Assembly (NCBI GenBank): GCA_965637545.1
Contig: OZ281497.1
Span: forward strand, 22,568,001-22,632,000
Direction of reading: 5' to 3'
DNA length: 64,000 nucleotides
Source: Phallusia mammillata
Lineage: Eukaryota
Shown: piece by piece, positions 1-58,032 of the stretch
Layout of the letters: every line of letters begins with the position of its first letter
Position numbering within the stretch: the stretch's first letter is position 1
Notes under the pieces: model-generated
Told to the model about the DNA's origin: nothing
The model's database searches: none
The model's input: only the letters and a program-made list of their open reading frames with translations
Position numbers and translations under genes: made by a program

Positions 1-192
1 CAAATCTATCAAGACGTAGCAAAGACCAGTGTTTGACAGGTTTTCCTTTTTGAAGTTAATTATTTTGGTTTATTTTTTAGCAGTCAGCACAGGCATATAA
101 TCAAGAAACAATATAGATGTTACGCTTTCGTTTTGAGAACTGATGTGGAAAACCTTATAGTCAAGCGATTGTTTAAAAGTTAAATTTATTAA

Positions 193-6873: not shown

Positions 6874-7624
6874 ATGGCACAGTTACCAACAAAAGATTCT
6901 GTAAATTCTGTAAAAGAAATTTTCGGTGATTCTATGGCGCCCCAAGGCAGCATATGAATCAGGAAACATGATTTATTATTCTATGGGTGGAGTTTGGTGG
7001 AGAATCGTGGTAAACCTACGGACGACTGCAACGTAAAAGGAACGGCCGAAAAATGGATGAAAATGGAAGCACAGAAGAAGACGCAAAATCCTTCAACAAG
7101 TCTTTACAGGTTGCACCGTTAACAAAATCAAACAAGTTTCCCAAAACGTTACGAGTGATTTACTGGTGCGTGGGGTTGCCTTTACGCTTCGAAATGATTC
7201 ACAACCTGCTGTTTTAGCGAGTTTGAGTGGTGTAACCATTCCAAACCTAGATGAAAGTGGTATATGTGTACAAACGGGTATATTGGAAAACGAAATATCG
7301 GTAAAATGTGTGTATGAAGGGTTTTTTAGGTTTGGTTTGGGTGACCGCTAAGTAGCTTTAAGAGACCGCAAGTGTTTCATTTAAATACCAAAAAATAGCC
7401 ATATTTGCTTAAACGAAATTTTGGGAAACCGCTGAAGAAATTTGTGGACCGTTTCGGTCCCCCAAAACACTTTAAAAAAACAGTGTATGTATGGTTTTGC
7501 TGAGTCATGTGAAGCTGTTCCGTTGTTAACTGTCGTAAACATGCTGAGTGATTATTTTGGCCTTAGGTGGGTGTCAAAATGTACGAACAAAGGTGCTTGG
7601 TGCAACTATGTCGGCATACAGTAA
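6874..7624 (+). pseudogene. Family X pseudogene (subfamily C), frameshifts plus insertion
   Basis: Motifs GNMIYYS, VAFTLRND and WCNYVGIQ* are recognisable across several frames. Interrupted by a ~172-bp insertion. Confidence 0.85.
7317..7488. mobile_element. Short insertion in family X pseudogene
   Basis: Absent from the paralog at 21355-21385 (aaaatgtgtgtatggttttgc). Flanked by duplicated gtatg. No clear TIRs. Confidence 0.5.
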
Positions 7625-9748
7625 ATTTTAAGTAGTGTGATTGCAATGTATATGTATGTAATGAAGAAATTATGACAAACTGTATATATTTGTAATTGAT
7701 TTTTGATGTTGATCTAATCATGATTGCTCTTTATCGCGTATACTGGAAATATAATTTACGATTTAAATAAAAAAGTTTTAAAGCATTTTTAGGCAAGTAG
7801 AAAGCGTTCGCGCTTGAGCTTAACTCTGCTTTGCAGCAATAAAAAGTTGCAAATAATAGATTTAAATTTTCAGAAACCTCCATGAATGCCTTGAATACAT
7901 TTTATATTGCTAGACAGCCGATTTAAATTGCATTTAGGTTTTTTTATAGTTGTATTGCTAATACTGTTACGTCCTTTAGTTGTCGCCGGAGTGCTTGAAA
8001 AAAAACTGACTGTATTTCACAACCGTAAATTTAAACAGCAATAAAACACACAAAGCTGGGCCAAGGACTCGGCAGTCAACATAGCAGAGGTGCCAATCGA
8101 GTGTTATAAAAGTGTTACATGTATACGATCGAATCTTGATTCGTTACTAACGTTCATTACTTACAGCAAGAGGAAGGGCTTCACAAGGCCTTAGACTTAC
8201 CAGCATTTAGTTGATATTGCGAGTTTAGTAGGCACAACAGGTGCTAACAGAGAGGGCTACACAGTATACCGCCAGACGGCGCACTTGCCGCCGTAAGGTG
8301 GTGCATTTTGCCACCACAAGGTGGCGCAATATATTTTATATTGTTGCCCCCACCCCCACCCCCCCTAAAATCCTGGATACGCCACTGGCCACTATCCCAA
8401 GTTATGTACCATCTACATTACACACTATACAAAATCAATAGTCATAAAGTAAAAGTAAAGTAGTCAAGGGGCAATGTCTAATCATTCGCGTTTAGCTGCA
8501 AATGTAATGTTTTATTGAAACGTAAGTATGTCTGGCTACAGCCTAAACAAGAGAATAGGAAAAAACGGCAAATGCTGTATCAAATGGGCTCAAACTAAAA
8601 CAAAAAAAGGTCAAACACATCCCGAATGCCGTTGAAACTGATAGCAATTAGCAAATACTGACCATTTCCCTGTGCAGCATTGTTAGTGTCAATAAATTCA
8701 AATGTGTAGCAAGTGAATATTTGCGTTAAAAACATAGAAACTTAAGTTCATTTAAACTGTCTTAATGCAAACTAAACTGATGTAGAATAGCAATTTTGAG
8801 ATTGCTCGAGACACACAGTTTTGCGCTAGGTTCGTTAGGTTTCAACCATTAAATTAGTGATTGATACTGCGCTGTATTATAAGTGAGAAATGTAATGTTG
8901 CGTCAATGACCTTGATTTCAGAATAAGTTTCTGTTGCAACAACTAAGACCGGTTTACACCAAGCGAAGCTACAAACGAGAATTATTTTTTCTCTGTTTAA
9001 GCAACGCGTGGGAAAGTCCGATTTCGCGCTTCTCTCCTTTGCGCGCTCCGCCTCTGAGTTGCTCCATGAGCAACAGAAACCACCCTTCGATCTTGCGTTT
9101 TTTGTACAGAAATACTTCATTCCAACCTTTAACCAAAAATGTACGTTACTAAGGAACGTAGGGAAAATAATTTCATTACCTCTACGATTACTTTTTTTGT
9201 ACATCCAAGTTAAATAACCTTTTCAACAGGGCGAATTAATGATCTGCCATGAGCAGTTAAAGTCACATTTGTTTTTCGTTTTTTCTTCGGTTGAATGTGC
9301 TTCATTGCTCTTTGGAAATAACTGTGAGGGATGATAATGGCTTGTGCACCAGAGACCACTTTGAATCTAGTGGATAAACATAACAAATTTTAAAAAATAG
9401 ATATCTGCAAAATCTTGGTTCATCGTGGTTGCATCTCACCTTGGCTATAATACTTGTAACAAACCTTTACAAAATGATTTTATTCATCGCAGCTAAAACG
9501 TCGTATTCCATGTGCGGGACATCACCATTCACGACTATACCTAGTTCTACATTTGAACAGCGTCTGAGGGAGCGTAAGTAGAATGTCGACGTACCTTCCC
9601 TACAGCATTAATTACAAATTTCGTTGCTTAAATGCCGCTGCGCGAATTCGTCTCCTAGAACCGCGTCGAAGCACTGGTTCAGAGGAATGAATGGTTCCTG
9701 CAACAATCTTAGGACCACTCGATCATTTCTAAGGCCACAAATAAATTG

Positions 9749-9814: not shown

Positions 9815-10639
9815 TCGAATTTCCAGTGACATGCCTGCATACCTATCAACTGTTTCATGAACCTACTTATTTCTTACAAGGATTCATATCGGTCTAATGC
9901 TAGATTCCTTTTGGGTTTACGGTATGCATCAAATTTATCAAGAATTACCTTTCGGATTTTTGCGTTCGTCATTCCTGAGTTCCAATGTATTATAAATGTC
10001 CCGTCCATCCAAGGCGAAAATAACTGCATTTTTTCATGTTAGACTTTCCCGATTATTTGCCGCCAATTTCGAAAGTTTTCTGCAACGTTTCCATTGTGGA
10101 AATTCATTTCCTGTTTGTTGCTTGGAAATTCCATTGTTAAATCACCATTTCTGACACCCTGTACTGATTTATTCCAAGGAGCCAAAAGCAAAACTGCACC
10201 GCATGCACGCACAGTCAGAATGGCCTCTAAGGGAGAGGTAGCATACAAAAAACTACGTAGTGGAAAATCACTCAAGCGAATAATTACGTCATATCGCAAA
10301 TCTAACCGACTTTTGGCATTACAATAGGAGGTTGTTGTGAGCCCATCTGAGACACACAGTTTCTTTAAAGCCGTGTTGTGGCCTTAAAATGTAAAGCAAC
10401 CATTGCTTAATAAAATTTTTTATCCGTGAACGAAAAGGAATGATAGTCGCCAAACCCAGTGTGGAGTGTTTGTTGTTTAGCAGTAAAACGCTGTTTCATT
10501 TAAACACTAATCACGTTATTGCTTGTTGTACTAATACAAACACACCGAAACGGGGGATACTGTTAAATATTGATTAAAAGGTAAAACGCTTTCTATCAAT
10601 AAACAACGAATGTCTGTTTGTTTAAGATACAATCCAGGA

Positions 10640-10890
10640 ACCAGAAACATGATTCATTATTCTCTGGATGGAGTAATTGTTGTGTAAGCTACGGAAGATT
10701 GCAACGTCAAGGGAACGGCAGAAAAATATATATGAAAATGATAGCACCAAATAAGAAGCAGAGTGAATTCTTTAACGTGTCTTTATACTAGGCTCCTTAA
10801 AACATGAGTGATGCAATGGTGTGTAAAGTTCCCTTAACGCTTCGAAATGATTCACAATCTGTGTCAAAGAATTAGATTGGTGTAAACCTT
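10640..10890 (+). pseudogene. Family X degenerate 5'/central fragment
   Basis: DNA matches to aaacatgattcattattctctggatgga, tgcaacgtcaagggaacggcagaaaaa and acgcttcgaaatgattcacaa. Multiple stops and deletions. Confidence 0.7.
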
Positions 10891-11465
10891 TATATTGCGC
10901 TAAATACTTAGCTACGTTTTCTGCTGTAGGTTAAAAAAGAGTAAATAAAGAAATTTGTTTTTGAATACAACTAATAAACAACTTTATTTGCACTTAACAT
11001 TCCCACAAATCCGATATAATTTGTTTTTACAGTTTGATTGGTCTGTATTGTATTACATTTTACGATCGTTAGGTGTCGCCCGAATGCATTGGAGAAACTT
11101 AGTTCATGCTGATGTTCGACATGTAGAAAAAGAAGTCCACTTTGATCCATGCAAAATCTTAAACCTCAGTGTAATTAAAAACTGGAAGCGTCTTGAACTT
11201 AAAAACTCAATAAAATACAACATAAGGCTTAACCTTCGATCCTTTTGTCGTTTGCAATTAAAAGTTTAAATTTTTACACAACTTCCGTTTGCCAAAGTTA
11301 GCCTGTAAGCTTTTATGTTTTACTGCATGATTAGGAGATATGATAAAAAATACAGTAATGCAATTCCACTCTGAGGCGGATTGTGTCGTTTTGCAACACG
11401 TTAGAGTGACAAATTTGTTTTCATGATAATTTACCTCTCTTTTATCACTGTACAGTCATGTAAGG

Positions 11466-11785
11466 CAGTGGTTCCCAACCTTTTGTTTTTTGAAAATTAC
11501 TACCCCAGTTTGAAAAATAAAAAACATCAAACATTTTTTTTCGATTTTCCGCCGATTTAGAGCTGGTTCAAAGCACTATGAGCCAGACAACGCTTAACAG
11601 TGATCTCACACAAACATTTCGCCGTCACAAACAGAATAATTTATTATCACGCCAAATAGTCATGAAATTGTAATTGGGAAACAATTCATAGCCTTGGGAA
11701 ACAACAAAATATCGCTACTAAATTCAGATGCTCTAATTTTCACAAAAACTGGCGACCCAACAGAATTTACAGGCGACCCCTTACA
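11466..11785. mobile_element. Truncated hAT (Charlie/Buster-like) MITE
   Basis: Starts cagtggttcccaacc and is flanked by tgtaagg on both sides. Absent from paralogous sites (29576, 33720). Right TIR missing. Confidence 0.5.
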
Positions 11786-12168
11786 TTGTAAGGTGTTATT
11801 TAAATCACGTAAGTGGGAAGCTGTTATTTTCTGTAACTCAGTCTTCCGAATGATGAATTATTATTGCGTGGTTAAACGCCTGATGTAACCTGATGGTGTT
11901 GTAAATATACATTTGTGATTGTTTGAGCTTTTGTGTGAATATAATCGGCCTTGTAGGAGGTGGCTGTGAGGCCGCCTGAGACGCGGAGTTTCTTTCAAAG
12001 CCAGGATACTTAGTTTATTTTGGTTCAAGCATGAAATGGTTTTATTTTATAACAAAAGTTTTGCAGGTTGTAGCAGTTGATATGTGCGCTTTCAGGCGTT
12101 TTTACAATGCTTAAAACAGTTAGTAGTGTGGCCTGTATATTATAATGTATGTATTTTAACATGCTCCG

Positions 12169-12482
12169 CAGGAGTGTGCAACTTTTGTCATTATGGGGTC
12201 AAATACAACCATAATTAGATCACGGACTGCATCTTTAAAAACAAGAAGGGATTTTACTTCGTTTTATACCAAACAAGTCTACATTGAGTTAACAACGAAA
12301 TTCGCATTTGATTCTAGCCGCATTATTGTCAGATCGCAGAAAAATAGCACCAGGTGCATTAATCTGCTTAAAAGTATAATATAATAACTGGACCCGTTTA
12401 AAATACAAGCGTCTCTGCGGGCCACACAACCTATAATCATTGGACAGTATTTGGCCAGCGAGCGGCAGGTTGCACACCCCTG
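12169..12482. mobile_element. hAT-type MITE, same family as 27993..28293
   Basis: TIRs caggagtgtgcaac / ggttgcacacccctg. Internal sequence aligns with the 28-kb copy. TSD not recognisable. Confidence 0.7.
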
Positions 12483-12746
12483 CTCTAACGTACAAAGTAT
12501 GCAATTTTGCGTAGTTTTCAGTTAAGTGAGCTTAGTACAGTGTCTACTGTTTGGTGTTTAGCAGTAAAGCGTTTTCACGAAAATTGTTTACTTTGTAAAG
12601 GGCATTTGCCTTAATTGCGTTTCAAGTTAATTTAAATATTAACATACATTTAACTAACATGCGTTTCAAAAGTCACATTTTGATTATATATTGTAGATAG
12701 TTTTGTGTTTCAAAATTTGTTACTATTTAAGCCACCATTCTTTGCT

Positions 12747-13397
12747 ATGTCTAACCAACCACCACTACTACCGCCACAACCACAAATACAAAAATACCAG
12801 TTTTCAGTGACTCTTGGCCTTTCCAGGCCGGATTTAATATTTGGAAACATGATATATTATTCCCCCGATGGAGCATATTGGTGGAGGATTCAAGTTGACC
12901 CAACGGCCGATCGCAACATCACCGGCATCGCGGAAAAAATCGATGTCAATGGTACCGCCTTGCTGGCCGACCCGCAGGAGATAACCCGTTCCCTTTCTTG
13001 TGTCTTTACACGTTCGAATGTTAAAAGTGTAACACCAGTTAAATTGCCTCCCACAATCTACCAAAAGGTGTACAATGTTGCATTCACACTCAGGAAAGGC
13101 ACACAATTTCCTGATCCACCGAACTGGACTGGTGTAAATGTAACTATTTCTGGTGTAAACATAAAAACAGGCCCATTAAAGAAGAAAGATTCTGTCCAAT
13201 CTGTGTATGGTTATGCATCCACACCTAATCGTATACAATTACTAAATGTGGTGAACATACTATGTAATTATTTTAGCCCCACAAACGTAAGATATGTGTC
13301 CGAATGTAAGAATCCACTAGGTTGGGGTTTCTTTGCTGATGTAGAGATAGAATTACCAAGATATGCACACATGGACGAATCTTTACTCTGGTGTTAA
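12747..13397 (+). CDS. Family X protein, divergent subfamily (216 aa from first ATG)
   Basis: First ATG at 12747 within ORF 12705..13397. Motifs YQFSVTL, GNMIYYS, NITGIAEKIDVNG, VAFTLRK, SVYGYAS, NVRYVSEC. Confidence 0.85.
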   Translation: MSNQPPLLPPQPQIQKYQFSVTLGLSRPDLIFGNMIYYSPDGAYWWRIQVDPTADRNITGIAEKIDVNGTALLADPQEITRSLSCVFTRSNVKSVTPVKLPPTIYQKVYNVAFTLRKGTQFPDPPNWTGVNVTISGVNIKTGPLKKKDSVQSVYGYASTPNRIQLLNVVNILCNYFSPTNVRYVSECKNPLGWGFFADVEIELPRYAHMDESLLWC

Positions 13398-13930
13398 GTA
13401 CGGAAATATGTATCGACTTGTATTGATTTTATGACTAATCGCTTGTAATTAAATTGATTTGTTTTTTCTGTTTGTTGAATATAATTTTCCCTAGCAAATG
13501 TTTAATAAAACTGACAAATATACAAAGGAATGAAAGGCGTTTTAAGCTGAACATAGCATTTAGTATTCTATGGTTTTACTAAGCGGCAAATGCAAAAAAA
13601 AACTCTGGAGCAAATATAATTACCATGTAAAACTACAAAGCGTTGCTGGAACTCTTTCTAGACGTTACTTAAATATTAACGTAGCAGTTAAATTCGACTC
13701 ACAAAACCGGTTAGTTGATAGTCAGTGTCGAAGTATTGCTCTTTTTGCTCTGTGTCACCCACTTGCGACAAATGTTTAAAGCAGTATTTTTCCACCTAGT
13801 TTCACAAAACATGTTTACCTGCTTAGTATAGCGAGCCTGACTCACATAGCAGAGATAGTTACTCAAGTGGAAGACTTTTATTCCCTGCGACGGTTAATAA
13901 TGAATCGTTTTATTTTATGTCATTTTAAAG

Positions 13931-14596
13931 CAACGGTTCCCAAACTGGGGTCCGTGGTCCTTTAGGGGTCCGTGATGAAAGTTTAGGGGGACCGCGAAGC
14001 GGTTAAAGTAATTGTATAATTCTCAGTTTGTGCCACTAAATAAGTTTAAAACAAAGTAGAATTAAAAATCGACTGTCTCCATTGCTAAACAATAGCCTTT
14101 ATTGTATGACAACTATCAAAAATGCAATTGTTCGCGCACAATCGTAATGCTTTTTGTCTTGTCTGTGATGTCACAAGCTGTCTTAGGATGATTTTTTGCG
14201 CAATTTTGCATAACCGGCTAAAATCCTGGAACCAATTTTCGTTTTTATGAAATACGGATTTAGGCTTAAGGACCGCGAGCACTGGAAATAATGGTAATGT
14301 GACCGTTTTGAAAAAAATATGAAGTTTGGGAACAACTGCTTTAAAGCCATTGCAACGTCCCGTGAACGTGCCCCGGCTATATCGCGGAGCGTCACACGAG
14401 GGAGAAACGCGATTCCTAATGGCCCCCAACAAGCTGTCCACACATGTAGGGTGTTTTTTACATCTTATTGTGCAAAGAGAACCATAGCAGACGAGGGAAA
14501 CGATAGGAAACGGTTTCTACAAAGACATGGCATTAGCGCAGCGCTTTAAACGTATGAATGTAACTTAAAGCTCACCAACAGTTATGGGAACCGGAA
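13931..14596. mobile_element. Degenerate hAT-like MITE
   Basis: Left end caacggttcccaaactggggtccg, possible right end tgggaaccgg. No TSD found. Confidence 0.35.
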
Positions 14597-14965
14597 TAAA
14601 ACATATAACATGGGCGATCCCAGTTCACACACCTAAATACACAATAAGCATGATACTACAATTTTGCTTACCAAGCGATGTAGAGCAACAGTGTAGAAAA
14701 TCATGTTTTTTTACATGTACTTGAAATACAATTGTAAACGCTTTTGAAATAAAGGTTTAAAAGATTTATTTTGGCAAGTAGCAGCTTGGCACGTAATTTC
14801 TAAAAAAATTATTACAAGCGGTTTAAACAATTTGAGTAACTCAAGCCAATTGCCATTGTAACATGGAAGTTTTTATTGCGCTAAATATTTTGCTTATATT
14901 TTGTTTTCTGTTGTAGGAAAAAGGGTGAAAATTTAATCAAATTCTTTTTTTAATACAACTAATAA

Positions 14966-15424
14966 CAGGGAGTCGAACCGGAACTGAACCCGCGAACCAG
15001 TTTGAGCGGTTAATTTCGTTAAACCCGAACCAACCCGAACCGCTAAAAAGATTTTCTGAAAACCCGAACCGGAGTTGAACCCCATATTTTGTTTGGCGTT
15101 GGACCCGAACCGGAACCGAACCAGTAAAAAATGCAGTAGGTTTTATGTTTCGCGATTTTTTTCAAAACAGCGCACCGAAGAATACACGAGATAACACTTT
15201 TAGGGCGTGTCAAAAATAACAGTGCACGGGTACATTTCGTTTGAAGTTTTATAAGGCCAGATAGATAATGGGTAGAATTAAACTAAAACGAATAAAAATT
15301 TGAACCGGATAAAAAACGCAAACCGTTTCGGACCAGATAAACTGCCCGAACCGAACTCGAACCCTTTAAAAACAAATAACCCGAACCGAACCTGAACCCA
15401 TATGACAAACGGTTCGACGCCCTG
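14966..15424. mobile_element. hAT-type MITE (459 bp)
   Basis: 15-bp TIRs cagggagtcgaaccg / cggttcgacgccctg (1 mismatch). Many internal ccgaacc repeats. ctaataa on both flanks, offset by 3 nt on the right. Confidence 0.8.
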
Positions 15425-16905
15425 AGTCTAATAATGGAATTTATTTGCTTTGTAAACTGGAAGCGTATTGAACTTAAAAACTCAACAAAATACAACATAA
15501 GGCCTAACCTTTGACCGTTTTGTCGCATGCAATTAAAAGTTTAAATTTTTCACAAAACTTTCTTTTGCCAAAGTGTGCATGAATAGGAGATATAATAAAA
15601 ATACAGTAAAGCAATTCCACTGTAAGGCAGATCTAAAGTTTGTTTTGCAACACGTTAGTGTGACAAATTTGTTTTCAAGAACATTTACCTTATATCACTG
15701 TACTGTCATTTCAATTGCTGCTGTTATTTCCTGTAAACGATGAATCATTACTCTACGTAGTTTATCTGATGGTGTTTTGAATATACATTTGTGATTGTTT
15801 AAGCTTTAGTGTAATCTTAGGTTGCTGTGAGCCTGTCTGAGATCTAAAACTTTATTTGCGTATCAATGCATAATACATTGACGCAATCTTATTATTAGGA
15901 ATGTGTTTTATAATGCTTGTTGACACTAAAACGTTTTCACGAATTATCTGTAAACAATATATAAGTCTTATAATATCCCATGCAAAGACAAAAGAGCAAT
16001 GGTTTTGGTTTCGCTAGCCATTAAAATTGTACAAATATATTTTGTTTAATTTACCAACTAATTTGGATTGCGTAACACGGGTTTGTGTATTTTATGACGC
16101 GTGTAGATTATTTGGAAAAGGTTTCAGCATTCTGTAGAAAGATCCTGCACAAACAGTAAAAATTTTACTAACAAACCTTCTTTAGCAGGTATGAGATTAA
16201 GTTGTGTGGTTTAGTGTACATAAGATTTATTAAGATAAACAAATTTGCTTGCCAAGTTAAAACCTTACATTATATTTAGAATATACTAAATGTAACTTTT
16301 AAATTAAACTTATGTAAAACATTACATTTGCAGCCACACACTTACTAAGTTTTATATATATTGTTACTCAGAATCGTACTGCAGTGCCAGAGTTCATAGG
16401 GAAACCAGAAAATGGCTCTTTTCTCGTAGATATATTTGGCTTTCTAGTTGTACGGCAGCCCACCAAGATTCGTTCCCAAGAAAGCAAATTCAGTCTTGAC
16501 TTGCGGATGGTTCAAGTTTAAGAAGAAGTGTAGCCAAGATGCTACGTTGCTTGATTTTGAATTTTAGCAATTTTGTTAAATTGTTGATTAGAAAGTTTGA
16601 CAAAAGTTGCTCAAAATAACCAAAAAATTAAAATTTCTCAACTTATGTGATAACTTTTGATCAACTGACTAAAGTGACCTACTCGTCAATAATATGCCTT
16701 ATTTTAGATGCCATCTGGTAGCTCAGACATTGATATGAAGTTGTGTTTAGGTCTTTATGCCATGGAAAGTATTTCTATAAATAGTAAGGACTCATTTTTC
16801 GCTGGTAATCTTACATTGAATGGCAATAATCGTCTTTTCAACCATTTCTTTTTCAAGTTGTTGGACTTTGTAGGCAAAAAGTTTTAATCTTATCTATCGA
16901 ATAAC

Positions 16906-17535
16906 ATGCCTTATGAAACAGCAAAGAATCCAAGCGTGGATCCAGTGGAAAAATACCAGTTTTCCGTGTCGCTCCACTCTGCACGCCGCAGGAATGATTT
17001 GGCATCTGGAAACACTATTTATTATTCTCTTGACGGTGGTTTTGCAAAAGGATTTTTATGGAAAGTTTCGGTAAATCCTGCTCAAAGCCGAAACATCACT
17101 GGAATAGCAGAAAAAATCGATGTAAATGGTCTTACAGTGCAGACTGACCAACAACAAGCTAAGTGGGCTCTTAAACGTATTTTTACCTATTGCAATGTTG
17201 ATAGTATCACACCAGTCACTTGTGCCCCTACAAATGATCTTATGGTCCGTAATGTCGCTTTCACACTTCGAAATGACCCGCAGTTAGTTGATCTGAAAAA
17301 TTTGGCCGGTGTAAACAATATAATACATGTTGATGGTCACAACGTAAATGTAAAAACTGGTCAACTGGCACAAGAAGAATCTGTTCAATGTGTGTATGGC
17401 TTTGCTCAATCAATGGAACCTATTTCGTTGCTAGCTGTGGTAAATATGCTGGGTAATCATTTTGATCATGCAAACGTAAGATATGTGTCCAAATGCATTA
17501 GTTCTGGTGGTTGGTGCAACTATGCTGGTATCTAG
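16906..17535 (+). CDS. Family X protein, subfamily C (209 aa)
   Basis: Full ATG-TAG ORF with all family motifs. The only intact copy ending in WCNYAGI, i.e. keeping the Tyr. Confidence 0.85.
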   Translation: MPYETAKNPSVDPVEKYQFSVSLHSARRRNDLASGNTIYYSLDGGFAKGFLWKVSVNPAQSRNITGIAEKIDVNGLTVQTDQQQAKWALKRIFTYCNVDSITPVTCAPTNDLMVRNVAFTLRNDPQLVDLKNLAGVNNIIHVDGHNVNVKTGQLAQEESVQCVYGFAQSMEPISLLAVVNMLGNHFDHANVRYVSKCISSGGWCNYAGI

Positions 17536-18458
17536 TAAATTACAAATACTAAGTTTGTCTCAAACGTGTCATTTAGAACATGTACGAATGTGTATAACTT
17601 CATAACTACGTTGATTTTGGTTTGAGGAATTTCGGTTTTTCATATGTTAGTTGGCTATTTTTAGACTAAATTTGAACAATCATCAAACCTTTAAAGACGC
17701 TGTATATAAGTTATTATGTATTATTTAAAACGTTGATGTTTAACTTCTGATTTAACGCTTGTTAATTTTTGTCTGATTTAATTACTTTGTATGTATACTG
17801 TACAAATAAATTTGCTAAACAATTTAAGTTTTTTACCGACTGTAAATTTGCCGACAGCATAATTTCACATTGCGTGAAACATTTTAGCATTTACACAGTG
17901 AACCCGAAACATAGAAAATAATTAACATCAAGTTCTTCAGAGACAGTTGGTCGTCGGGATACCAATTAACGTCACTATGCAAACAGTACTGGGCAGCCAT
18001 ACAACACGACTGACACGTAGGTGACGATGGTAACACCAGGTAAATCCCCAGCAGGTTCTTTTATAACGAAACCCCGGTTTCGCTGTGATGACGTATGTTG
18101 ATTTTTCATGACAGGTTGAGGCGCGCCATACACTATGTGTGGAATATACCGTCCACAATATTTTTTTTCCACTCATATTTTATTTGTCACGCTTTGACAC
18201 TAAAACAATTACATAAACAAAATAATGACGAAAGTAATAACTGCGCGACCGAAAAGCACCCAATTCCGACAATAGTAATATATAAGTCTATAGACTTGCT
18301 GAATTTGAAATTCGGATTCATTTTTATCAGTCTTCATTGGTTTTATTGACATGTGATTTATAAGTACGTCGTTATGAACAACGGCCCAATCTGGTATGAC
18401 AAATAACAGTACAATAAGAGTTAAACACGTGAAACGGCGCACATTTGATGAATTATGC

Positions 18459-19239
18459 CTACTTGACGACGAATTTATCGATGCTTGTTAATATGTAGGC
18501 ATACTCTGATGCCAATTCATCTTTTGGAAAATAGCTCGAAAGTTGTAGGTCGCAGAGCTTGCTGTCACAATACCGTGCATGACACGAACTGTTAAAAAAA
18601 GTGTTTTGTGGCTAAACTTGGTTTATTGCTTCGGTAGAGCAAAACACCATTTATTAAAAATATTATTATTTCCGAAAATAATCTGTTAAAAAGTTTATTG
18701 AAAAAATAGATATGTTTGGTTGTGGTAAGTTTCACTTGCTGCACATATTTTCGCAACGAGTTGAGCATAAATGAAGATAATAAAGTAGCATTTTGTTGCA
18801 TATTTTGGTAATGTCCGATTTGTATACCTATATTTCGTGAAATCCAAGTACACTCCAAAGCTTTCAAAATTGTTTTCTATCGTTCCCATATAGTCACATA
18901 GGTCACTTGGATCGTTGCAAATTTCTTTTGGGACACAAGTTATAACCGGCTGATGCTTAGCAGTTGCGGATTCTGCACGAAAAACCTTACTCGGTTAACG
19001 TTAGACACAAATATGCAACAGATAGTTGAATTGCTGTACTACGGTTTACTATAGGATACCAATAGGAATTTTTTTTGGAAATTTTCTGCTTCTTGCTCAC
19101 CACATATGCCATAACGAAAAGTGTATTCCAGCCTCGCGCACGTCTGATCTTCTCTACCGCAATCACACTCAACAAGTTCAGCACTACCTTGCGAGAAGAC
19201 CACAAAAATCACGAACAGCAACAACTTGGATTTCTGCAT
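18459..19239 (-). CDS. Secreted Cys-rich three-finger-like protein, 137 aa, copy 2
   Basis: Exons 19239-19101, 18972-18828, 18588-18459. Same exon lengths, phases and stop as copy 1. The CC motif reads YC here (CHARYCDSKLCD). Confidence 0.8.
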
Positions 19240-20433
19240 CCTTAATTATGTACGTAAACCCAATGACAATGTAGAGTTTTTAATCAAGAAAACTAGCTTC
19301 TGAAGTAATACAGTGGAGAACTTGAATGATGTAATATAGGACATGTCCACCCAAGGCATGTCCTGAGTCGTTCCTCTTTGGTGCGACTCGGCTTTCGATA
19401 CGCGCGATGACGCTCGCTGAATATTTGAATAAGGTTACAGCGTTCTATAGAAATACTTGCAAAAACATTTACTCTTCACCTGAATTACAGCCATAGATTT
19501 CTCTTTTGTCCGCAGCGTTTCGGACTTTTAAAAAGCAGGAGAAAAGTTTGTAAAATGATATTGTTGGGCCACCGGAAAACAACAATGCTGATTTTAATCG
19601 CTAAATCTGTTATTGGCAAAGCTGCGTATACTGAGCTGCGATCGTAGGGTAAACAAAGCTGCGATCGTGGTGGCAGAAGACGTGGATTATAGCGGACTAC
19701 CACCAAATTAAGTCTGGCTTAAATGTATCACCCAATAAGCTAAACGGTTGCTAGTCATACTTTTGTCGAATATTTACATTAAACAAGGACAAAGTCCGTT
19801 AACAGTGTATCACACGTTAAGCAAGTTTCCACAGCATAGCATTTGCGCAGTACAAATTCTTGCACGGTTTAGCAAACAACACTGTTGATTTTAAAGGCAA
19901 CAACGTTGGTGGAAAAACACTGCAGCAAACTTTTTCGCGGGATAACGAAAAAGGCCAATCTTGCTGTACATTTCGATAGCTTGCATTAAACCAACCAGCG
20001 TTGGGTGGATGTAATGTAAATACAAACACTAAGAACAACCAGACACAACGCTTGCCATAACTGATTGCGAGATAGGTGTTTTCGTTTCACAATTTGCATT
20101 GTGCTCAAAGATTGATGTTGCCGAGTTGCACGCACAAAAATGGAGTCAAAGACTTTAGATGGCATCGTTTGCATTATAGACATCATGATTGTAATTCGCA
20201 CACGAAAAGTTATCTTGTTCAAATCTTTGTCAAAATTTTACTAACAAACCTTTGTTAGCAGATATGAGATTAAGTTGTGTGATTTAGTGTACAGAAGATT
20301 TGCTAAGATAAACAAAGTTGACTGCCAAGTTAAAGGTGAAAACCTTACAATATATTTATAATATACTACATGTGGCACCCAAATTAAACTTATGTAAGAC
20401 ATTACATTTGCAGCTACACACTTACTTATCATA

Positions 20434-21513
20434 ATGGCACAGTTATCAACATAAGATTCTGAAATACAAATTTTCAGAGACTCTTGAGTAACCCAAGGCA
20501 GCATATGAACCAGGAAACATTATTTATTATTCTATGGATGAAGTTTGGTGGAGAATTGCGGTGAAACCTTCGGTCGACTGCAACGTTCAAGGAACAGCCG
20601 AAAAAATAGATCAGAGTGAGAGCACAGAAGCAGATGCAGAGTGGCTCCTTCAACGGGCCTTTACAGATTGCACCGTTAACAAAATCAAACAAGTTTCCCA
20701 AAACGTTACGAGTGATTTACTGGTGCGTGATGTTGCCTTTACGCTTCGAAATGATTTACAACCTGCTGATTAGGTTAAAGTCAGACTTGGACAACTAGAT
20801 AATTCTAGTTGTCTAGTTGGGCAAATTAGAGCAAAATGGCGGTAATTCTAGTTCTAATCTAATTTAGAATTATAGAGTAAGCTCTAATTCTAATTCTAAT
20901 CTAATTTACAGTTTTCCCAAAATCGCTAGTTTGTCCAATGGCACTTTTAGGCATGTGATCTGAGCATGCATTTTTTAACCAAAGCCCACAAAACCATGCA
21001 ATTAACAAGACCAAACTACATCACTGAAACACGTTTTTCGGTGAAATTTGGCACTCAGCTCCGTTTAAACACGTTTTAGATGCACCGAATCGTATTGTTG
21101 TAAATGTGCAAATCTTCCAGTTCAAATTTGAAACAAACTAAAGTTGGTTGGCTCAAATCTAATTCTAGTTTAAATTCTAGTTTAATTTTTAGATTTTGAG
21201 AAAATTCTAATTCTAATTCTAATCTAATTTGCAAAAAAATGGGATGCTCTAATTTTAATTCTAATCTAATTTGAAAAACCGAAAAAAAATCTAGTTGTCC
21301 AAGTCTGGTTAAAGTGGTCTATGTGTACAAACGGGTATATTGAAAAACGAAAGATCGGTAAAATGTGTGTATGGTTTTGCTGAGTCATATGAATCTGTTC
21401 CGTTGTTAACTGTCGTAAACATGCTGAGTGATTATTTTGGTCGTGCAAACCTTAGGTGGGTGTTAGAATGTACGAACCAAGGAGCTTGGTGCAACTATGC
21501 TGGCATACAGTAA
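20434..21513 (+). pseudogene. Family X pseudogene (subfamily C), early stop plus MITE insertion
   Basis: ATG GCA CAG TTA TCA ACA TAA, then family motifs, interrupted after VAFTLRNDLQPA by a MITE. Ends WCNYAGIQ*. Confidence 0.85.
20782..21307. mobile_element. hAT-type MITE (526 bp)
   Basis: Perfect 19-bp TIRs cagacttggacaactagat, perfect 8-bp TSD gttaaagt (20774-20781, 21308-21315), subterminal tctaattctaat repeats. Confidence 0.92.
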
Positions 21514-24117
21514 ATTTAAAGTAGTGTGATTGCAATGTAGATGTATGTAATGAAGAAAGTATGAAAACTGTGTATATTTGTAACTATTTTTTGATGTTGA
21601 TCTACACATGATTGTTCTTCATCGCGCTTACTGGAAATATAGTTGAAAACGTTTCGAAGAAAAAAGTTTTGATACATTTTTAGGCAAGTAGAAAGCGTTC
21701 GCGCTTGAGCTATGTAAACTGAGTAACGTAGCCTTGTTGCAATAAAAAGTTGCAAATGATAGATTTAAATTTTCTGAGACCTCTAATAATGCCTTGTTTG
21801 CATTTAATATTTCTAAATTTCCGCCGATTTCAATTGCATTTACAGTTTATTTCATGGTCTATAGTTGTATTTCTTGTACCGTTACATCCGTTAGATGTCT
21901 CCCGAGTGCTTGAAAAAACTTCGAGAGTCTGAGTCGCTTGACCAATACAAAGTCTCAACGCTGATTGCAATTCAAAACCGTGAATTTAAACGGCAATAAA
22001 ACACACAAAGCTTGGCCATGGACTCGGCGGTCAACATAGCAGACTGTCAGTCAAGCAGACTATTGAATTGCATGTTATGCCATGAGGTCTAAAGTTGCTT
22101 GTGTTAAAAGGAAATTTTTGGTGAGCCATGCAATAAAATGGCAATCTCGTAAAACTAAACAAATCACGATATTTCGACACGATGTAACAATCAAAAGATA
22201 AATTTCGAGGTCTTTTTGGCCTAATCTGTGAATCAAATGGGAAATAGCATGCACTTTTGCAATTTAAATTTTACACACTGTTGTTACTAAAACAAAACAA
22301 AAAAAACATTGTGCTGAGCGAGACAGATTTATTTTCAGGTAGCTACAAGTTTGATGCAGGACAAATTCGGTTTGGCGCAAAAAAACACTGTGTTAAACAT
22401 TTTGACAGTAATCTGGTAAAACACTTTCTTTAGTCCGGTACTCGATGCAGAATTGCGTGTCACCATCCAAATATATGTTATATCCTGACAAATCATTTTA
22501 CATTACAGACTATATAAAGTCAATAGTCATAAAGTAAAGTAGACAAGGGACAATGTATAATGTTTGGTTTCAACGAGATTTCTTTCTCTGTTTAAGCAAC
22601 GCGTGGGGAAGTCCCATTTTGCGCTTCTCTCGTTTGCGCGTATCGCGTCTCGGTTGCTTGGTGATCAACAGAAAACGCACTTCGGTGACGTAGCTGTTGT
22701 TTCCTTCAAAAACTATAATTAGTAATTAGTCTATACGTAGGATGGTTAAGCGCTTGACGTAATCTGGAGATGTTTTCAAATTCCTATCTGTGGCATTACA
22801 GCAGTAGTTTGATATGGTTCGTCTGAGAAAATGAGTTTCTTTAAAGTCATCAAAAGGTTTAAAACGTTTTGAAAACAGATTGCTTAGTGCCGTAACACAG
22901 TTAAAATAGAGTAATATTAAATTCAATTATGTGATCTAATTTTAGTAGATTGTATACAACTAAGCAGCTGTATATGTTGAACCCCAGTCATTAATAAAAA
23001 CTACATAAATTTAGAGAGAGAGAGGATTTGCCAGATCATGCATACAATATATTGCACCAAGTGCACACATGTATGCTTCTTGCTCACCACATGGGATATA
23101 AGCAACATCGGTCATATCAACCCCATAGGTAACTCCCAATTGGCCTCTTTTAGAGCAACTGCGGTTTTGGTATTCGATGACGAATGTTGATTATATCGAT
23201 AGGTTTCAGCGAGCTAAAGAATTCTGGAACCAGACACCCATTCTGTACCTGAATTAGAGCAAAATCATTGCTTTGATGTGTCAGTTGTGTTTTAAGCAGT
23301 AAAGTAACAAGCGCTTTTAAAATGTCATGGTGAGTTATAAGATTGTACTTTAAAGTACAAACCGAGCGCGAACGGAAAACGAAAAACGTGTTTTGGTCGC
23401 TCACATTCTTTTTATTAAGGTTTGACCCAAATGTATAGCACAACAAGCAAAAAAGTTTGCTAGTCAACATTTTGACGAATATTTACTTCAAATTTACAAA
23501 GGCCAAAGTCCTTTTACCAGTGCCTAATACTTACTTATGAAGTGCTGCTACATCAAGAGTGAAGTTCCATAGCCTACCGTTTACGCAATACAAATTGTTG
23601 CATCAATAGCAAATAGCACTGTTGATTTTCAAAGCAACAACGTTCAGTGGCAAAATACTGTAGTGAACTTTTATCGTGAAATAACGAAAAGGTCTATCTT
23701 AACGCAGCAAAGGTATCGCGATTATTTACGGGTTCGCTTGATCTGAAATTAAACTAGATTGGAGCAGCTTGGTTTAAACAGGGCAGCTATAGACGTACAC
23801 AACATTTTCAATGATAATTTGGCCTGTTAACCGTTAGGTGTGTACGAAACCACAAATCCAGTAGAATGGTGCAACAAATCTGGTATGCAGTAGATTAAAA
23901 GTACATCAGATTAGTATTAACAAGCATATTCCAGTATTGAAAGTATAGAAATGTTTCTTACATTTGCGACTACGTGATTGACACTTCCATTGATTTGTGG
24001 ACACGTTTTTAAATGTATGCTTTTTCGGCGTAGAAACAAAAAACATAAACATTTAAACGATGTCATTAGATATGTTTTGCTTTTTCAGGTAAAACGCAGG
24101 TTTCAGGTAAATATACT

Positions 24118-24771
24118 ATGGCTACATATTCTTCACGGCACAACACTGCAAGCATTCCTGATATGCAACAAATTTTCCGGTTTTCTGCAATACTGCCAGC
24201 CAAACGAGACCATCATGCAAATGGGCTTTTAATTTATTATTCTCTTAAAAAAAGTTTTGCTGATGGTTACATGTGGCGAGTAAATCTTAATGAAACATAT
24301 AGAGTCAACGTAAGTGGAACAGTGGAAAAATACAAAATTTTAAACGGGCAAGGAGAACCGGTAGAGTTTGATAAAGATGAAGGAAAGGAAGCTATTTCTA
24401 AAACATTTACAAAATGTACAAATGTAGAAATAATATCAGCAGTCAATGCTTCACCTGGGAAAGTAAATTTTAAACAGTTTGCTATAACCTTTCGGTTTCC
24501 CGAAAATTCACTACCACCAACTATTGAAGAAAGGTTTACAATCAACGGCTCCGGTGTGTGGATTAGAACAGGTCCAGTGAACAGCGATAGAGGATGTGTT
24601 TATGGTTTTGCTGAATCTGAAAATGATGTTGGTTTGCTGAAGATGGCGGAAAGCCTAGGAAACTGTTATGGTCGAGAAAATTTGGTGTATGTTGCCAATT
24701 GTTTGATGAAAGAACAATGGCTTAAATTTGCAGAAATAGAAATCCCCCAAACACATTTCCAACAACAATAA
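24118..24771 (+). CDS. Family X protein, subfamily B (217 aa)
   Basis: Full ORF with FRFSA, LIYYSLKKSFADGYMWRV, VSGTVEK, FAITFR, CVYGFAES, GRENLVYVANC. Confidence 0.85.
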   Translation: MATYSSRHNTASIPDMQQIFRFSAILPAKRDHHANGLLIYYSLKKSFADGYMWRVNLNETYRVNVSGTVEKYKILNGQGEPVEFDKDEGKEAISKTFTKCTNVEIISAVNASPGKVNFKQFAITFRFPENSLPPTIEERFTINGSGVWIRTGPVNSDRGCVYGFAESENDVGLLKMAESLGNCYGRENLVYVANCLMKEQWLKFAEIEIPQTHFQQQ

Positions 24772-26688: not shown

Positions 26689-27285
26689 ATGGCGTCAGCA
26701 ACCGAAGATTCTGTTCATTTTTTGGTGCAAAAATTCAAGTTTTCGGTGACTCTTGAGAACCCCAAGGCAGCATATTTTTGAGGAAATGTGATTTATTATT
26801 CTATGGATGGAATTTGGTGGAGAGTTGTGGTGGAACCTACCTATGAACGCAACGTTAAGGGAACGGCAGAAAAACTGGATAAAAATGGTAGCACCAAAGA
26901 GGAAGCAGAATGGATCCTTCAACGTGTCTTTACACGGAGCACTGTTGACAAAATCGAACAAGTTTCCCAAAGAGCCACGAGATTCACAACCTGCAGTGAT
27001 TCACAACCTGCTGTTTTAGAGAATTGGATTGACGTAAACCTTCCAAATCTAGGTGATAGTGGTGTAAACATAAAAACGGGTAGTTTGGCAGAAGAACCAT
27101 CTGTCCAATGTGTGTATGGTTTAGCTGAGTCATTGGAATCTGTCCCGTTGTTAACTGTCGTAAACTTACTAAGGAATCATTTTGGTCGTGCGAACCTGAG
27201 GTGTGTGCTAAAATGCACGAACCAAGAAGCTTGGTTCAACTATGCTGGCATACAGTACATTTCAAGTACTGTAAATGCAATGTAG
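26689..27285 (+). pseudogene. Family X near-intact pseudogene (subfamily C)
   Basis: ATG at 26689 is in frame with ORF 26788..27285, with one TGA at 26779-26781. The VAFTLRN motif is replaced by a local duplication of gattcacaacctgc. Confidence 0.8.
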
Positions 27286-31005: not shown

Positions 31006-31644
31006 CTTTTAACAGTGCCTAATATTTACTTATGAAGTGCTGCTTCATCACAAGTAAAGCAAGTTTCCATAGTCAATCATTTGCGCAATACAAATTGTTG
31101 CATCAATAGCAAATTACACTGATGATTTTCAAAGCAACAACGTTCAGTGGCAAAATACTGTAGTGAACTTTTATCGTGGGATAACGAAATGGTCCATTTT
31201 AACGTAGCAAAGGTATCGCGAGTATTTACGGGTTCGCTTCATCTGAAATTAAAATAGGCTTAGGCAGCTTGTATTAAACAGGGCAGCTTTAGGCGTTTAA
31301 AAAACATGTTGAATGATATTTGACCCTGTAAACGTTAGGTGTGTGTCCGAAACCAAAAATCCAGTAGAATGATGCAACAAAGCTGATATGCAGAAGAATA
31401 AAAGTACTCAAGATTGGCATTAAGAAGCGTATTCCAGTATTGAAAGTGTAGAAATGTTTGTTAATTTTGCGACTAGCGTGGGTGATTGACACGTCCATTG
31501 ATTTATGTATTCCTTTTTAATTGTCTGCTAATTTGCCGTAGAAGTTTAAAAATAATATTAAAAATAATACAATGTCAATAGAAATGTTTTGCTTTTCAGT
31601 GGTAAGCACCTTTTGAGTTAAACAAATTTTACACTTCATTTGCC

Positions 31645-35400: not shown

Positions 35401-35959
35401 TTTATTTCAGAAGTGATAAAATATATCATGTAGCAGTGGACTTAAACATTTTTGTAGAAACCGCTAAGCACGGTATGTCAACGCTACTTTTTTCAGTACC
35501 AATATATCATATAAGGATTACCCGTTTTCAGAGCCAATATATCATATAGGGAATGTTTGAGAGAGTTTTTTTTTAGTTTGTTAAATAAATATCAAATGGG
35601 AATCAGACTTACTTTTGCATAGCTGAATACGTCAGGCAGGCGATTCTAGTTATAAAAATCCCGGCCAACCAAGCTTTAACCTGGACCAGGTTTGGACTTT
35701 TGTTTGAAACAAAACGGCTTGATTGACTTCACTCTAGGTCTCATTGGTGTCGTAATTTCACTTTGGTTAACTTAAACAAAACTATACAAGCAAATGTTTT
35801 GGCGACATCTACACTTGAATTAATAATCACTGAAGTTTCGTTGTCACTTTCCTGTTTCGATGGTACACAACAGCGTATTTCAAACACCTTTTTATCTTCA
35901 GTAAATATTTGCTACTTTAGTTCGAAAAACTTTGTAGGTTACCCTGACTTTGATTTATC

Positions 35960-36607
35960 ATGTCGAATTCTAAACAAATATTTCGAAGCAGCCCTGGTAT
36001 GTACAAATTGTTTCAGTTTTCCGCTGAATTGCAATCGAAAAAAGACTATTACAAAAAGGGTCTGTTGATATATTATTCTCTTGGAAAAAGTTTTGCTGAT
36101 GGATACTTGTGGCGAGTACAGCTTAATCCCACCTATAGCGTCAAAGTAAATGGGACAATGGAAAAAATCAAAATTTAGAACGGGCGACGAGAATCGGTAA
36201 AGATCGGTGAAAAAGAAGCAGAGGAAGCTATTTCTAAAACATTTACAGGCTGCAAAGATGTAAAAATAACAACTGCAGTAAAACCTTCACCGGTGGAGGT
36301 AAAGGCAAAACAATTTGCCTTTCGGTTCGACGGTGATTCAATGCCAGCAACCGTTGCTAACAGCTTTCTTGTCAACGGCTTTGAAGTTGACACTAAAACA
36401 GGACCATTCAATCGCGACAAAGAATGTGTTTACGGTTTCGCAGAATCCAAAACTGATTTTGCCTTGCTGGACATGGCGCTTCAGCTAGGAAAGGAATATG
36501 GTTGCCAAAATGTGGTGTATGTGGCCAACTGTTTGATGAAAAAAGAATGGCTTAAACATGCAGAAATAGAAATTCCGAAACCAAATATGCATACCCAACT
36601 TCAATGA
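35960..36607 (+). pseudogene. Family X subfamily B copy with a single premature TAG
   Basis: ORFs 35960..36178 and 36293..36607 are one frame broken only by TAG at 36176-36178. Paralogs have TTA or TCA at this codon. Confidence 0.8.
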
Positions 36608-37920
36608 AGCACTGTAGTTTGTAAAGTAGCCTCCTTAGGAAAGTGTAACCTTGTTTATGTTCTAGATGTTGTTATTGCAGCATGGAAAAACATCAATATA
36701 AGCACAAAAATCGAAAAAATAGTAGGATGTAGTTCAAACTTGTCAAAATCAACAGGATTGTACAATTTTGAAATGTGTCACTTTTCTCATTGTTGTTTTT
36801 TGGTTTGGGAAAAAATGTTTTTCTCCACTAAGGAATATTACACGTTAAGAAAACGAATTTTGATTTGCTGTATTGTTTTTCAATAAATGTTAGATAAAAC
36901 AGTTTTGAATTTATAAAGCAGTAAACTATTTGTATCTAAGTTTAGATAAACGTACTTTTCGGTTTATTGAGCGAAATAAAACACACATAAACAGTAACGA
37001 AATAAAATGAAAACCACAAAGCAAGTACCGCAAAGGGTATGAGCATAAAATAGAGAAAGTGAAAGTCAAGGCCTTTTCTCGCCGCCGAATGGCGGAAGTG
37101 CATGGGCCCTGAAAGAAACAAGGTAAAGTGATCTGTTACAAAAAATGCATTAAATATATAATCTAAGTTGAGATAAACCTAAATTCATAAATAAGGTCAG
37201 CCCGGAAATATTCGTGCCGACCAGCGATAACGGTATACTCTTATATAACCCCTACGGTTACAATAGTTGAATGTCGCCTATGTTCTGTGATAAACTTTAT
37301 TTGTGCAAGCTATGACAAATAGGAAGAAACTAGTCTTCTTTTGTTGTGAGAGAAAATTAATTAGTCGTCACCTTGATATTGCGCCAAATACATTCCATTG
37401 AGTAAAACGCTTTGTTGTCTCAATTGTTGACTCAAAGTTACTTCATACAATTCTGTACGGCAAACAATACCCTGATGTTTTCTATTAATCAGGGTCAGCG
37501 CTTGGTTTGCTTTGAACTTGCCGACAGCGTAGGGTAGGCGGATTTTTCTTCCAAAGCTGATTAACATTCCAGATTTTTGCAGGTGTAGTCGGAACAACGT
37601 CATTGACGCGATCAAATAGCCCCGCCACCGCACGTGTCCAGTGTAAAACGCCAGTCTAGTTTTAAATGCACCGTTGGGAGGTGTTAATTTAATCTTCATT
37701 TGGTGTTTGAGCAAAAATGTAACATGCGGAATTTCGGCAAAAGAAGATCCGTAACCTCTATTTCAAACAATTGTAGAGTTTACCTTATTGAAGTATTTAA
37801 CCTTGTACTTGTTGGAAACTAAGTGTTATTACACTTGTTTTCGAAACAGACTTTGTTTTGCCGTTGAAGTAGGTTAGTTGCAACGAGATGAACAAAGTAT
37901 TGTTGACTCACAATAAGAAA

Positions 37921-38130
37921 AAGTCGGAGTTAAAAAATGGAAACTTCATTTATTAATTTTTGGCTGGACATTTTACCAATGGATATTCGTGGAAAAATTG
38001 TGATGGACCCAACGCAAGATGAAAACACTACTGGGATAGCATAAAAAATCGATGTGAATGGCATTGCAACATCTCAACAACAGCAAATGGTGAAGCAAAT
38101 GACTGCTCTCTGTATTAAAGTGTTAAACTA
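37921..38130 (+). pseudogene. Family X 5' fragment
   Basis: KSELKNGNFIY*FLAGHFTNGYSWKIVMDPTQDENTTGIA*KIDVNG. Confidence 0.7.
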
Positions 38131-57759: not shown

Positions 57760-57960
57760 ACTAAACACCTTGTAAAGGACAAGGTCGCATGACGTCATCC
57801 TAGTGTGTGACGTCGTAAAGTGTGACGTCGTAAAGTGTGACGTCACAGAAAGTGTGAAAACTGGACAAAACACCTTGTGAACAAGGATTCGTGACGTCAT
57901 GCTATTGTTTGACGTCATAAAGTGTGTGTGACGTCATAAAATGTGACGTCACAGAACGTG
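57760..57960. repeat. ~100-bp tandem duplication rich in TGACGTCA palindromes
   Basis: Six TGACGTCA (57790, 57838, 57892, 57910, 57929, 57944) and two TGACGTCG (57808, 57823) sites in two similar units. Confidence 0.8.
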
Positions 57961-58032
57961 GGAAAACTGAACTGGCGATAAGAGTGTATGCGGGTAAACA
58001 GCAGTGTCATCTTATTAATGTACACAGCGCTA

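Follow-up and report, generated by a model that had tools for sequence, protein, structure and literature searches.

We found that a stretch of 64,000 nucleotides from the ascidian Phallusia mammillata (assembly GCA_965637545.1, contig OZ281497.1, positions 22,568,001 to 22,632,000 of the forward strand, the whole of which is called the window below) carries a tandem array of related genes, Family X, whose open copies are under purifying selection and encode a domain described in no library, being absent from Pfam and without a relative in the PDB. The focal copy, at 16906-17535 on the + strand, is an uninterrupted open reading frame (ORF) of 209 codons in a single exon. The explanation that we favour, with about even confidence, is that Family X is an undescribed two-lobed recognition or adaptor domain that is tied to TKL-kinase signalling and has expanded as stand-alone copies. 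An earlier note on this DNA had proposed instead that Family X derives from the replication initiator (Rep) of a virus. Its reading of the gene itself was accurate: translation and codon positions agreed with the ORF and the residues that it quoted, with the motif VAFTLRN encoded at 17254-17274 and the TAT codon of a C-terminal tyrosine at 17521-17523.

A tandem array of Family X genes

Between 1 and 42.3 kb of the window we found seven open copies of Family X (812, 12705, 16906, 24118, 26788, 31645 and 41652) and, using tblastn, eight degraded copies or fragments between 6.9 and 38.1 kb, all on the + strand (Table 1), in agreement with the earlier description of the family as multi-copy. The open paralogues share 26-64% amino-acid identity in pairwise comparison, none of the family proteins in the window is longer than about 230 aa, and no signal peptide or membrane segment was found in any of the window translations. 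The degraded copies contain 0 to 4 in-frame stops each, and half of them (4/8) are spread over two reading frames. The 26788 copy is probably also truncated or a pseudogene, since one in-frame stop cuts its homologous upstream sequence.

Self-comparison revealed direct segmental duplications, for example at 5033-8088/18444-22043 and 23177-24742/30161-32290. Because the duplicated blocks span intergenic DNA, they represent tandem gene duplications and not mobile-element insertions; the same comparison showed no terminal repeats, and no transposase accompanied the copies. The ratio of non-synonymous to synonymous substitution rates (dN/dS) ranged from 0.18 to 0.62 in the 17 of 21 open-copy pairs with a converged estimate, and was 0.55 in the least saturated pair, 24118/31645 (dN 0.23, dS 0.42). 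These ratios indicate that the open copies are coding sequences subject to a relaxed purifying selection within a birth-and-death array. When the upstream regions of six copies were aligned, no common promoter block was found except in the closest pair.

Other observations concern the DNA between and next to the copies. The segment at 191-376 is 85% identical to 17492-17677, which comprises the last codons and the 3′ flank of the focal gene, and is probably the remnant of another copy just upstream of the 812 gene. A close inverted repeat between two family copies (4405-4569/4719-4843), with arms of some 80-90 nt at 87-88% identity, could be a small repeat that forms hairpins or one resembling a miniature inverted-repeat transposable element. 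Pyrimidine-rich stretches ending in AG are found just 5′ of the 24118 ATG (23868-24120), and the upstream region at 31395-31647 aligns closely with them; these stretches resemble splice acceptors, so that a non-coding 5′ exon or trans-splicing is conceivable for some copies.

Relatives of Family X and the link to a kinase

We searched 1.84 billion representative proteins with a Family X profile, with no length limit, and obtained 32 relatives (best E 2e-27), the longest of which has 236 aa if one kinase fusion is set apart; the proteins of the window itself are absent from this collection. Two relatives have public names, and both are ascidian: the kinase fusion, P0001, is a 'receptor-interacting serine/threonine-protein kinase 1-like' protein of Phallusia mammillata, and P0014 is an unnamed protein of Clavelina lepadiformis. 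The Family X domain is kept across different ascidian orders. The Clavelina gene has a single exon and is flanked by FAM228- and MRP-S24-type genes. The other relatives are found on eukaryote-like contigs of up to 3.9 Mb from metagenome assemblies, none of which looked human and where clusters also occur, with four Family X places at locus L006 and two at L010. A word-indexed protein search returned nothing for the single protein and only four family members for the 33-member alignment (A2), which is the basis of the column counts and of the second structure model given below; a tblastn search against 72,556 plasmids gave one chance match only (E 0.2), in an acyl-CoA carboxylase gene, and an Rfam search of the whole window found no match. 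In our reading, Family X is a family of cellular genes with a restricted taxonomic range and not a recognisable endogenous virus.

The surroundings of some relatives were also noted. The four places at L006 lie within 6 kb (10001-15831) of a contig region with only 31% G+C, and one of them has the opposite orientation. A predicted protein from another contig, P0038, continues into the beginning of the tandem copy that follows. Retroelement genes (RVT_1, rve and Integrase_H2C2) occur less than 10 kb from Family X genes on three unrelated contigs (Table 1), which is probably a mere matter of repeat-rich surroundings.

The fusion protein P0001 (550 aa) consists of a Pkinase domain at residues 32-302 (E 1.6e-45) and a Family X domain at residues 353-546. 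The best solved relatives of its kinase were plant receptor-like kinases, RIPK2, TAK1, IRAK4 and RIPK1 (E about 1e-17 to 1e-18), which places the kinase, as judged by these matches, in the TKL group (IRAK/RIPK-like). TKL kinases are drivers of innate-immune signalling, kinases of this class also drive cell-death signalling, in animals as well as plants, and the position C-terminal to an IRAK/RIPK-type kinase domain is normally occupied by adaptor or sensor domains. In a second organism, sampled three times (L003-L005; its contig turned up in two samples from ENA and in one metagenome sample from JGI), we found kinase exons that precede a Family X ORF, share its strand and keep the order of the fusion. 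The exons match P0001 residues 77-219 (40% identity, E 3.5e-26) and 220-293 (E 5e-4) and lie 5.6 and 4.5 kb 5′ of the Family X ORF; as these are separate matches, they may belong with it to one gene or to two neighbours.

Predicted structure and conserved residues

No known family was recognised in Family X. Pfam gave no match at E≤10 with the seven window proteins or with ten half-proteins, the C-terminal half alone included, and no Rep family at E≤1 with all 33 members. Sequence searches of the PDB, started from one protein alone or from 7- and 33-sequence profiles, produced chance-level matches only, and PADLOC, PHROGs and NCBIfam returned nothing but the kinase of one relative, with neither a Rep/HUH match nor a PADLOC defence model.

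A structure model made from seven sequences had a predicted local distance difference test score (pLDDT) of 78.7, and AlphaFold with the 33-sequence alignment reached a mean pLDDT of 93.5 and a predicted template-modelling score of 0.88, with all five models above 92. The predicted protein is divided into two lobes in which strands and helices follow one another alike (Table 1), suggesting that the lobes probably arose by an old internal duplication; the C-terminal lobe is the half that had been compared to a Rep nuclease domain. Neither model gave a Foldseek match at E≤1e-3 among 350,542 PDB chains, and Family X has a very confident predicted fold yet no significant structural neighbour.

Among the 33 members, the best-conserved columns of the N-terminal lobe are F19, R29, G35, N36, Y40, S41, W52, K53 and P58, followed by G66, E69, K70, G75, A85, A88 and F93. 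In the run V117-A-F-T-L-R122 the F is invariant (33/33), and T, L and R are found in 27, 28 and 25 of the 33 members, respectively. Further on in the C-terminal lobe, L130, T151, G152, V163, G165 (33/33), L175, L182, F186, C197 and W203 are conserved. The conserved basic and polar residues in both lobes (R29, N36, Y40, S41, K53, E69, K70, T120, R122, T151 and a basic residue at 188) suggest that a ligand, perhaps one bearing phosphate, binds at a defined site.

The favoured explanation

In this explanation, every Family X protein forms a single compact, cytosolic domain of roughly 200 aa made up of two lobes. Its single-exon genes multiply by segmental tandem duplication and decay by pseudogenisation, with the open copies held under purifying selection. 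The domain would act as a recognition or adaptor module feeding IRAK/RIPK-type (TKL) kinase signalling, and the stand-alone, fast-diverging copies, which in the window carry no fused kinase, would have diversified into sensors, adaptors or decoys that either pair with the domain on the kinase or share its ligand. If the kinase link holds, Family X would represent a new accessory or sensor domain of an innate-immune or cell-death pathway in the closest invertebrate relatives of vertebrates, and the array with its many dead copies would be a record of fast turnover under conflict.

Several points weigh against this explanation. The kinase link comes from one annotated fusion protein and one collinear locus, and no TKL kinase was found near Family X in the window or in five other relative loci of about 20 kb (the short loci L007 and L008 excluded). 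We infer the immune role solely from the class of the kinase and the birth-and-death pattern. The isoelectric points of the window copies spread from 4.9 to 9.1, so that a common nucleic-acid ligand is not obvious. With regard to the internal duplication, an hhalign comparison of the N-terminal with the C-terminal lobe detected no sequence repeat (probability 0.6%). Finally, local fold matches to viral Reps, described below, leave room for a possible viral ancestry of one lobe.

Enzyme activity or ligand binding as a possible alternative

Family X could instead be a new enzyme or small-ligand-binding fold with an active site of its own, for example for a nucleotide or phosphate compound, in which case the kinase fusion would couple this activity to signalling. 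We consider this unlikely, although some observations speak for it. The site would be built from the polar residues listed above, from R29 to T151, on the sheet, and there are ten or so conserved charged or polar positions over both lobes. The best PDB fold matches were tandem ACT domains, translation-factor domains, triphosphate-tunnel enzymes, Cas6/Cse3 and pseudouridine synthases, and weak whole-length matches to CYTH/TTM enzymes, pseudouridine synthases, tandem ACT domains and Cas6-type double ferredoxin-like proteins recurred. However, these matches have a template-modelling (TM) score of about 0.2 and E >3e-3, no profile match to any enzyme family was found, and some of the 'conserved' polar residues vary among the open copies (R122 and T120 in the 31645 copy).

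Likeness to viral Rep domains

The earlier note had read the C-terminal half as possibly a domesticated Rep. In its full form this explanation holds that the C-terminal lobe, or both lobes after duplication, is a captured HUH domain from the Rep of a CRESS-DNA virus (one with circular single-stranded DNA that encodes a Rep), which lost catalysis and was kept as a sensor or decoy binding single-stranded DNA or origins. We judge it a little-probable account, for reasons that lie both in the fold and in the residues.

Rep nuclease domains are 78-142 residues long, have motifs I-III on beta1, beta3 and alpha4, and often contain extra elements between beta1 and beta2 (PMC8780604). In our model the three places that had been matched to these motifs are on a strand, a strand and the last helix of the C-terminal lobe, the first-strand motif is the best-conserved part of the family, and the order of elements in this lobe fits the Rep layout provided that one strand, following the first, is taken for an insertion. 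When the viral structure library BFVD was searched with Foldseek, three matches passed 1e-3 with poor superposition (TM 0.19-0.27). They were followed by 13 local matches of 94-141 columns (probability 0.97-1.00, 12-21% identity, E 0.006-0.022), which the output does not assign to a lobe and whose named members are Reps of an uncultured virus, Cruciviridae, Circoviridae sp. and a cyclovirus. The root-mean-square deviation (rmsd) was 4.1-8.3 Å in 12 of these 13 matches and 17.8 Å in one, and the best target TM among the Rep matches was 0.54, for a Rep fragment of 105 aa. For true Rep endonuclease domains, among them the homologues from bacterial plasmids, superposition on the circovirus domain gives TM 0.6-0.9 and rmsd 0.5-3.4 Å (PMC8780604). 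Furthermore, the viral library is expected, from general considerations and not from a count, to hold very many Reps, which would make it easy for the best among numerous small alpha+beta sandwiches to appear; in the PDB, where solved Rep nuclease domains exist, such as 5XOR (PMC8780604), no Rep was among the top 50 matches of either model. As far as the models go, the fold-level hint of a Rep is real, but it is below the level needed for claiming homology.

The catalytic residues were then compared across the 33 members. At the place proposed for motif II, position 162 is C in 16, N in 9, S in 4 and another residue in 4; position 163 is V in 27, I in 5 and L in 1; and position 164 is Y in 15, H in 7, R in 4, F in 4, L in 2 and S in 1. 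A His/Gln pair at both flanking positions was found in none of the 33. Position 206, the proposed motif III Tyr, is Tyr in 10/33 and Phe in 6/33 and varies in the rest; the focal protein ends three residues past it, and no conserved nucleophilic Tyr with a following basic residue was found in the 33-member alignment. Within the window this column has Tyr in 16906, 26788 and four degraded copies and F, I, V or H elsewhere, exactly the distribution given earlier. The reported absence of the metal ligands was likewise correct, but it is not confined to some copies, since the pair is missing from 33/33: HUH chemistry is therefore absent from the whole family and its lack is not the loss of a single branch. 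With neither the metal-ligand pair nor a conserved nucleophile in any member, the Family X domain is predicted to be incapable of HUH nuclease chemistry.

The genomic setting points the same way. The earlier remark that no superfamily 3 (SF3) helicase follows the focal gene was borne out by the lack of any ORF of ≥120 aa in 17536-24117, and no helicase, capsid or other viral gene was found near the focal ORF, nor an origin stem-loop, at which no dedicated search was aimed. No relative of the size of a full-length Rep was present among the 1.84 billion proteins, the named relatives are ordinary cellular ascidian genes, one of them fused to a kinase, and a captured Rep domain would leave the N-terminal lobe, with its same element order, unexplained. 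In the literature on domesticated HUH or Rep genes we found no paper on a family like Family X. Thus the C-terminal layout, the high-probability local Rep matches and the absent catalytic set agree with the proposal, whereas neither a significant profile match to a Rep/HUH family (Pfam with whole proteins and halves, PDB, PHROGs, NCBIfam and the 1.84 billion proteins) nor a significant structural match was obtained, the outcome that the earlier note itself had named as speaking against it; viral domestication is therefore not established. If the Rep likeness were true, it would be a rare host reuse of a viral replication-initiator fold, and at present it is a lead only.

Other explanations

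We think it improbable that Family X has a non-immune, lineage-specific role, such as gamete or self/non-self recognition or development, with the kinase fusion as an isolated event. Tandem, fast-diverging and taxon-restricted arrays with many pseudogenes are typical of reproductive and allorecognition genes, in ascidians as elsewhere, and most of the relative loci have no kinase. Against this, the kinase collinearity is found in two organisms, and no copy has a signal peptide or membrane segment, which makes a cell-surface recognition role unlikely. A combined scenario, in which one lobe is a captured, dead Rep-type HUH domain that in ascidians was coupled to an IRAK/RIPK-like kinase and spread in the form of stand-alone copies, is in our view quite doubtful; it would provide animal innate immunity with a sensor or decoy directed at single-stranded DNA replicons and made from the initiator fold of the replicon. 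Finally, it is very hard to credit that the ORFs are non-functional remnants, repeat-borne or decaying, for although 8 of the 15 copies are degraded and retroelements are close to some relatives, dN/dS is <1 in every converged pair, the domain is kept between ascidian orders, its fold is predicted with confidence, and the blocks are ordinary direct segmental repeats that have no terminal repeats or accompanying transposase.

Other features of the window

The remaining genes of the window are ordinary cellular ones, namely a Zn_ribbon_3CxxC gene and exons for the PKK (polo kinase kinase) domain of an SLK/STK10-like kinase. In the former (44533-47847, - strand), the exons at 47635-47847 and 45537-45854 match PF13695 and are followed by a proline-rich ORF of 232 aa (44533-45231), which lies in the sole stretch of the window with raised G+C (0.42); an antisense ORF that overlaps it (44493-44948) is probably spurious. 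The PKK exons, at 61231-61551 and 63010-63459 on the - strand (E 6.5e-9 and 7.4e-10), form the C-terminal part of the kinase gene at the right end of the window, which has no relationship to the TKL kinase of the Family X fusion. At 57760-57972, two head-to-tail copies of an approximately 106-nt unit are 80% identical. The window contains no N and has a G+C content of about 36%; because the DNA is this AT-rich, the TATA-like octamer and the AATAAA hexamer that flank the focal gene are weak evidence for a promoter and a polyadenylation signal.

Table 1. Coordinates of the focal gene, the Family X copies in the window and selected features of related loci
Feature	Position	Strand	Remarks
Focal gene, Family X member, 209 aa	16906..17535	+	Model pLDDT 93.5; dN/dS <1 against paralogues with converged estimate
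N-terminal lobe, residues 1-108	16906..17229	+	Model: disordered tail of ~15 residues, strand, three strands, helix, strand
N-terminal lobe elements (residues)	strands 16-23, 36-40, 50-56, 63-72; helix 82-92; strand 96-104		Model
C-terminal lobe, residues 109-209	17230..17532	+	Model: strand, short helix, three strands, helix, strand, helix
C-terminal lobe elements (residues)	strand 113-122; short helix 130-133; strands 137-142, 145-156, 161-174; helix 175-186; strand 191-196; helix 200-207		Model
VAFTLRN, best-conserved family motif	17254..17274	+	First strand of C-terminal lobe; 33-member alignment
TATA-like octamer, possible promoter element	16776..16783	+	123 nt 5′ of ATG; weak evidence
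AATAAA hexamer, possible polyadenylation signal	17805..17810	+	270 nt 3′ of stop; weak evidence
Intact paralogue, 219 aa	812..1471	+	
Degraded copy, near full length	6917..7648	+	2 in-frame stops
Degraded N-terminal fragment	10649..10784	+	2 frames (at least 1 frameshift), 4 stops
Intact paralogue	12705..13397	+	ORF as listed; first ATG 12747
Degraded copy, two pieces	20447..21537	+	2 frames (at least 1 frameshift or insertion), 4 stops
Intact paralogue, 217 aa	24118..24771	+	
26788 copy, probably truncated or a pseudogene	26701..27285	+	Open only from second strand onward; one in-frame stop in homologous upstream sequence
Degraded C-terminal fragment	31176..31393	+	2 frames, 3 stops
Intact paralogue, 218 aa	31645..32301	+	64% identity to 24118 copy
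C-terminal fragment, about 58 codons	32664..32846	+	Match unbroken
C-terminal fragment, about 65 codons	33829..34032	+	Match unbroken
Degraded copy, near full length	35954..36598	+	1 in-frame stop
Degraded N-terminal fragment	37894..38110	+	2 frames, 2 stops
Intact paralogue, 218 aa	41652..42308	+	
TKL-kinase exons and Family X ORF, locus L003	2818-3267, 4152-4367, 8881-9543		Also L004, L005
Retroelement genes near relatives	L001 1-4496; L006 15962-17059; L009 232-1452		L001 includes SCAN-like Gag

Comparison with known systems

Compared with known systems, Family X shares features with several. CYTH/TTM enzymes resemble it in size, in a strand-rich pseudo-twofold layout and in conserved Glu, Lys and Arg residues on strands, and gave weak matches in all three fold searches, but TM was about 0.2 and there was no Pfam CYTH match at E≤10. 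Tandem ferredoxin-like or RRM-like proteins (Cas6/Cse3, tandem ACT) likewise have about 200 residues in two similar alpha+beta lobes and were among the top weak PDB matches; they differ in superposition (TM 0.17-0.26, rmsd 11-18 Å, E >3e-3), share no functional residues with Family X and gave no profile match. A whole-domain superposition with TM ≥0.5 was not reached on Cas6, ACT or CYTH-TTM, for which the values were 0.17-0.26.

The Rep HUH domain of CRESS-DNA viruses and plasmids (Viral_Rep/Gemini_AL1) is an alpha+beta sandwich of ~100 residues with an element order compatible with that of the C-terminal lobe, and it gave local Foldseek matches of high probability; the first strand of the C-terminal lobe carries a strongly conserved motif, which no profile picked up. 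In contrast to it, Family X has no profile match, superposes with TM ≤0.54 and rmsd ≥4.1 Å against the 0.6-0.9 and 0.5-3.4 Å of true Reps (PMC8780604), and lacks the metal-ligand pair in 33/33 members and a conserved nucleophilic Tyr with a basic residue. It also has no oligomerisation or SF3 helicase domain, possesses an extra N-terminal lobe and is found in a cellular genomic context.

The accessory domains of IRAK/RIPK-type (TKL) kinases, such as death-fold domains, differ from Family X in structure, for the death fold consists of six helices, whereas Family X is predicted to be a strand-rich alpha+beta domain, and the two have no sequence relation. They are alike in arrangement: Family X lies C-terminal to a TKL kinase in P0001 and also occurs on its own, as adaptor domains do.

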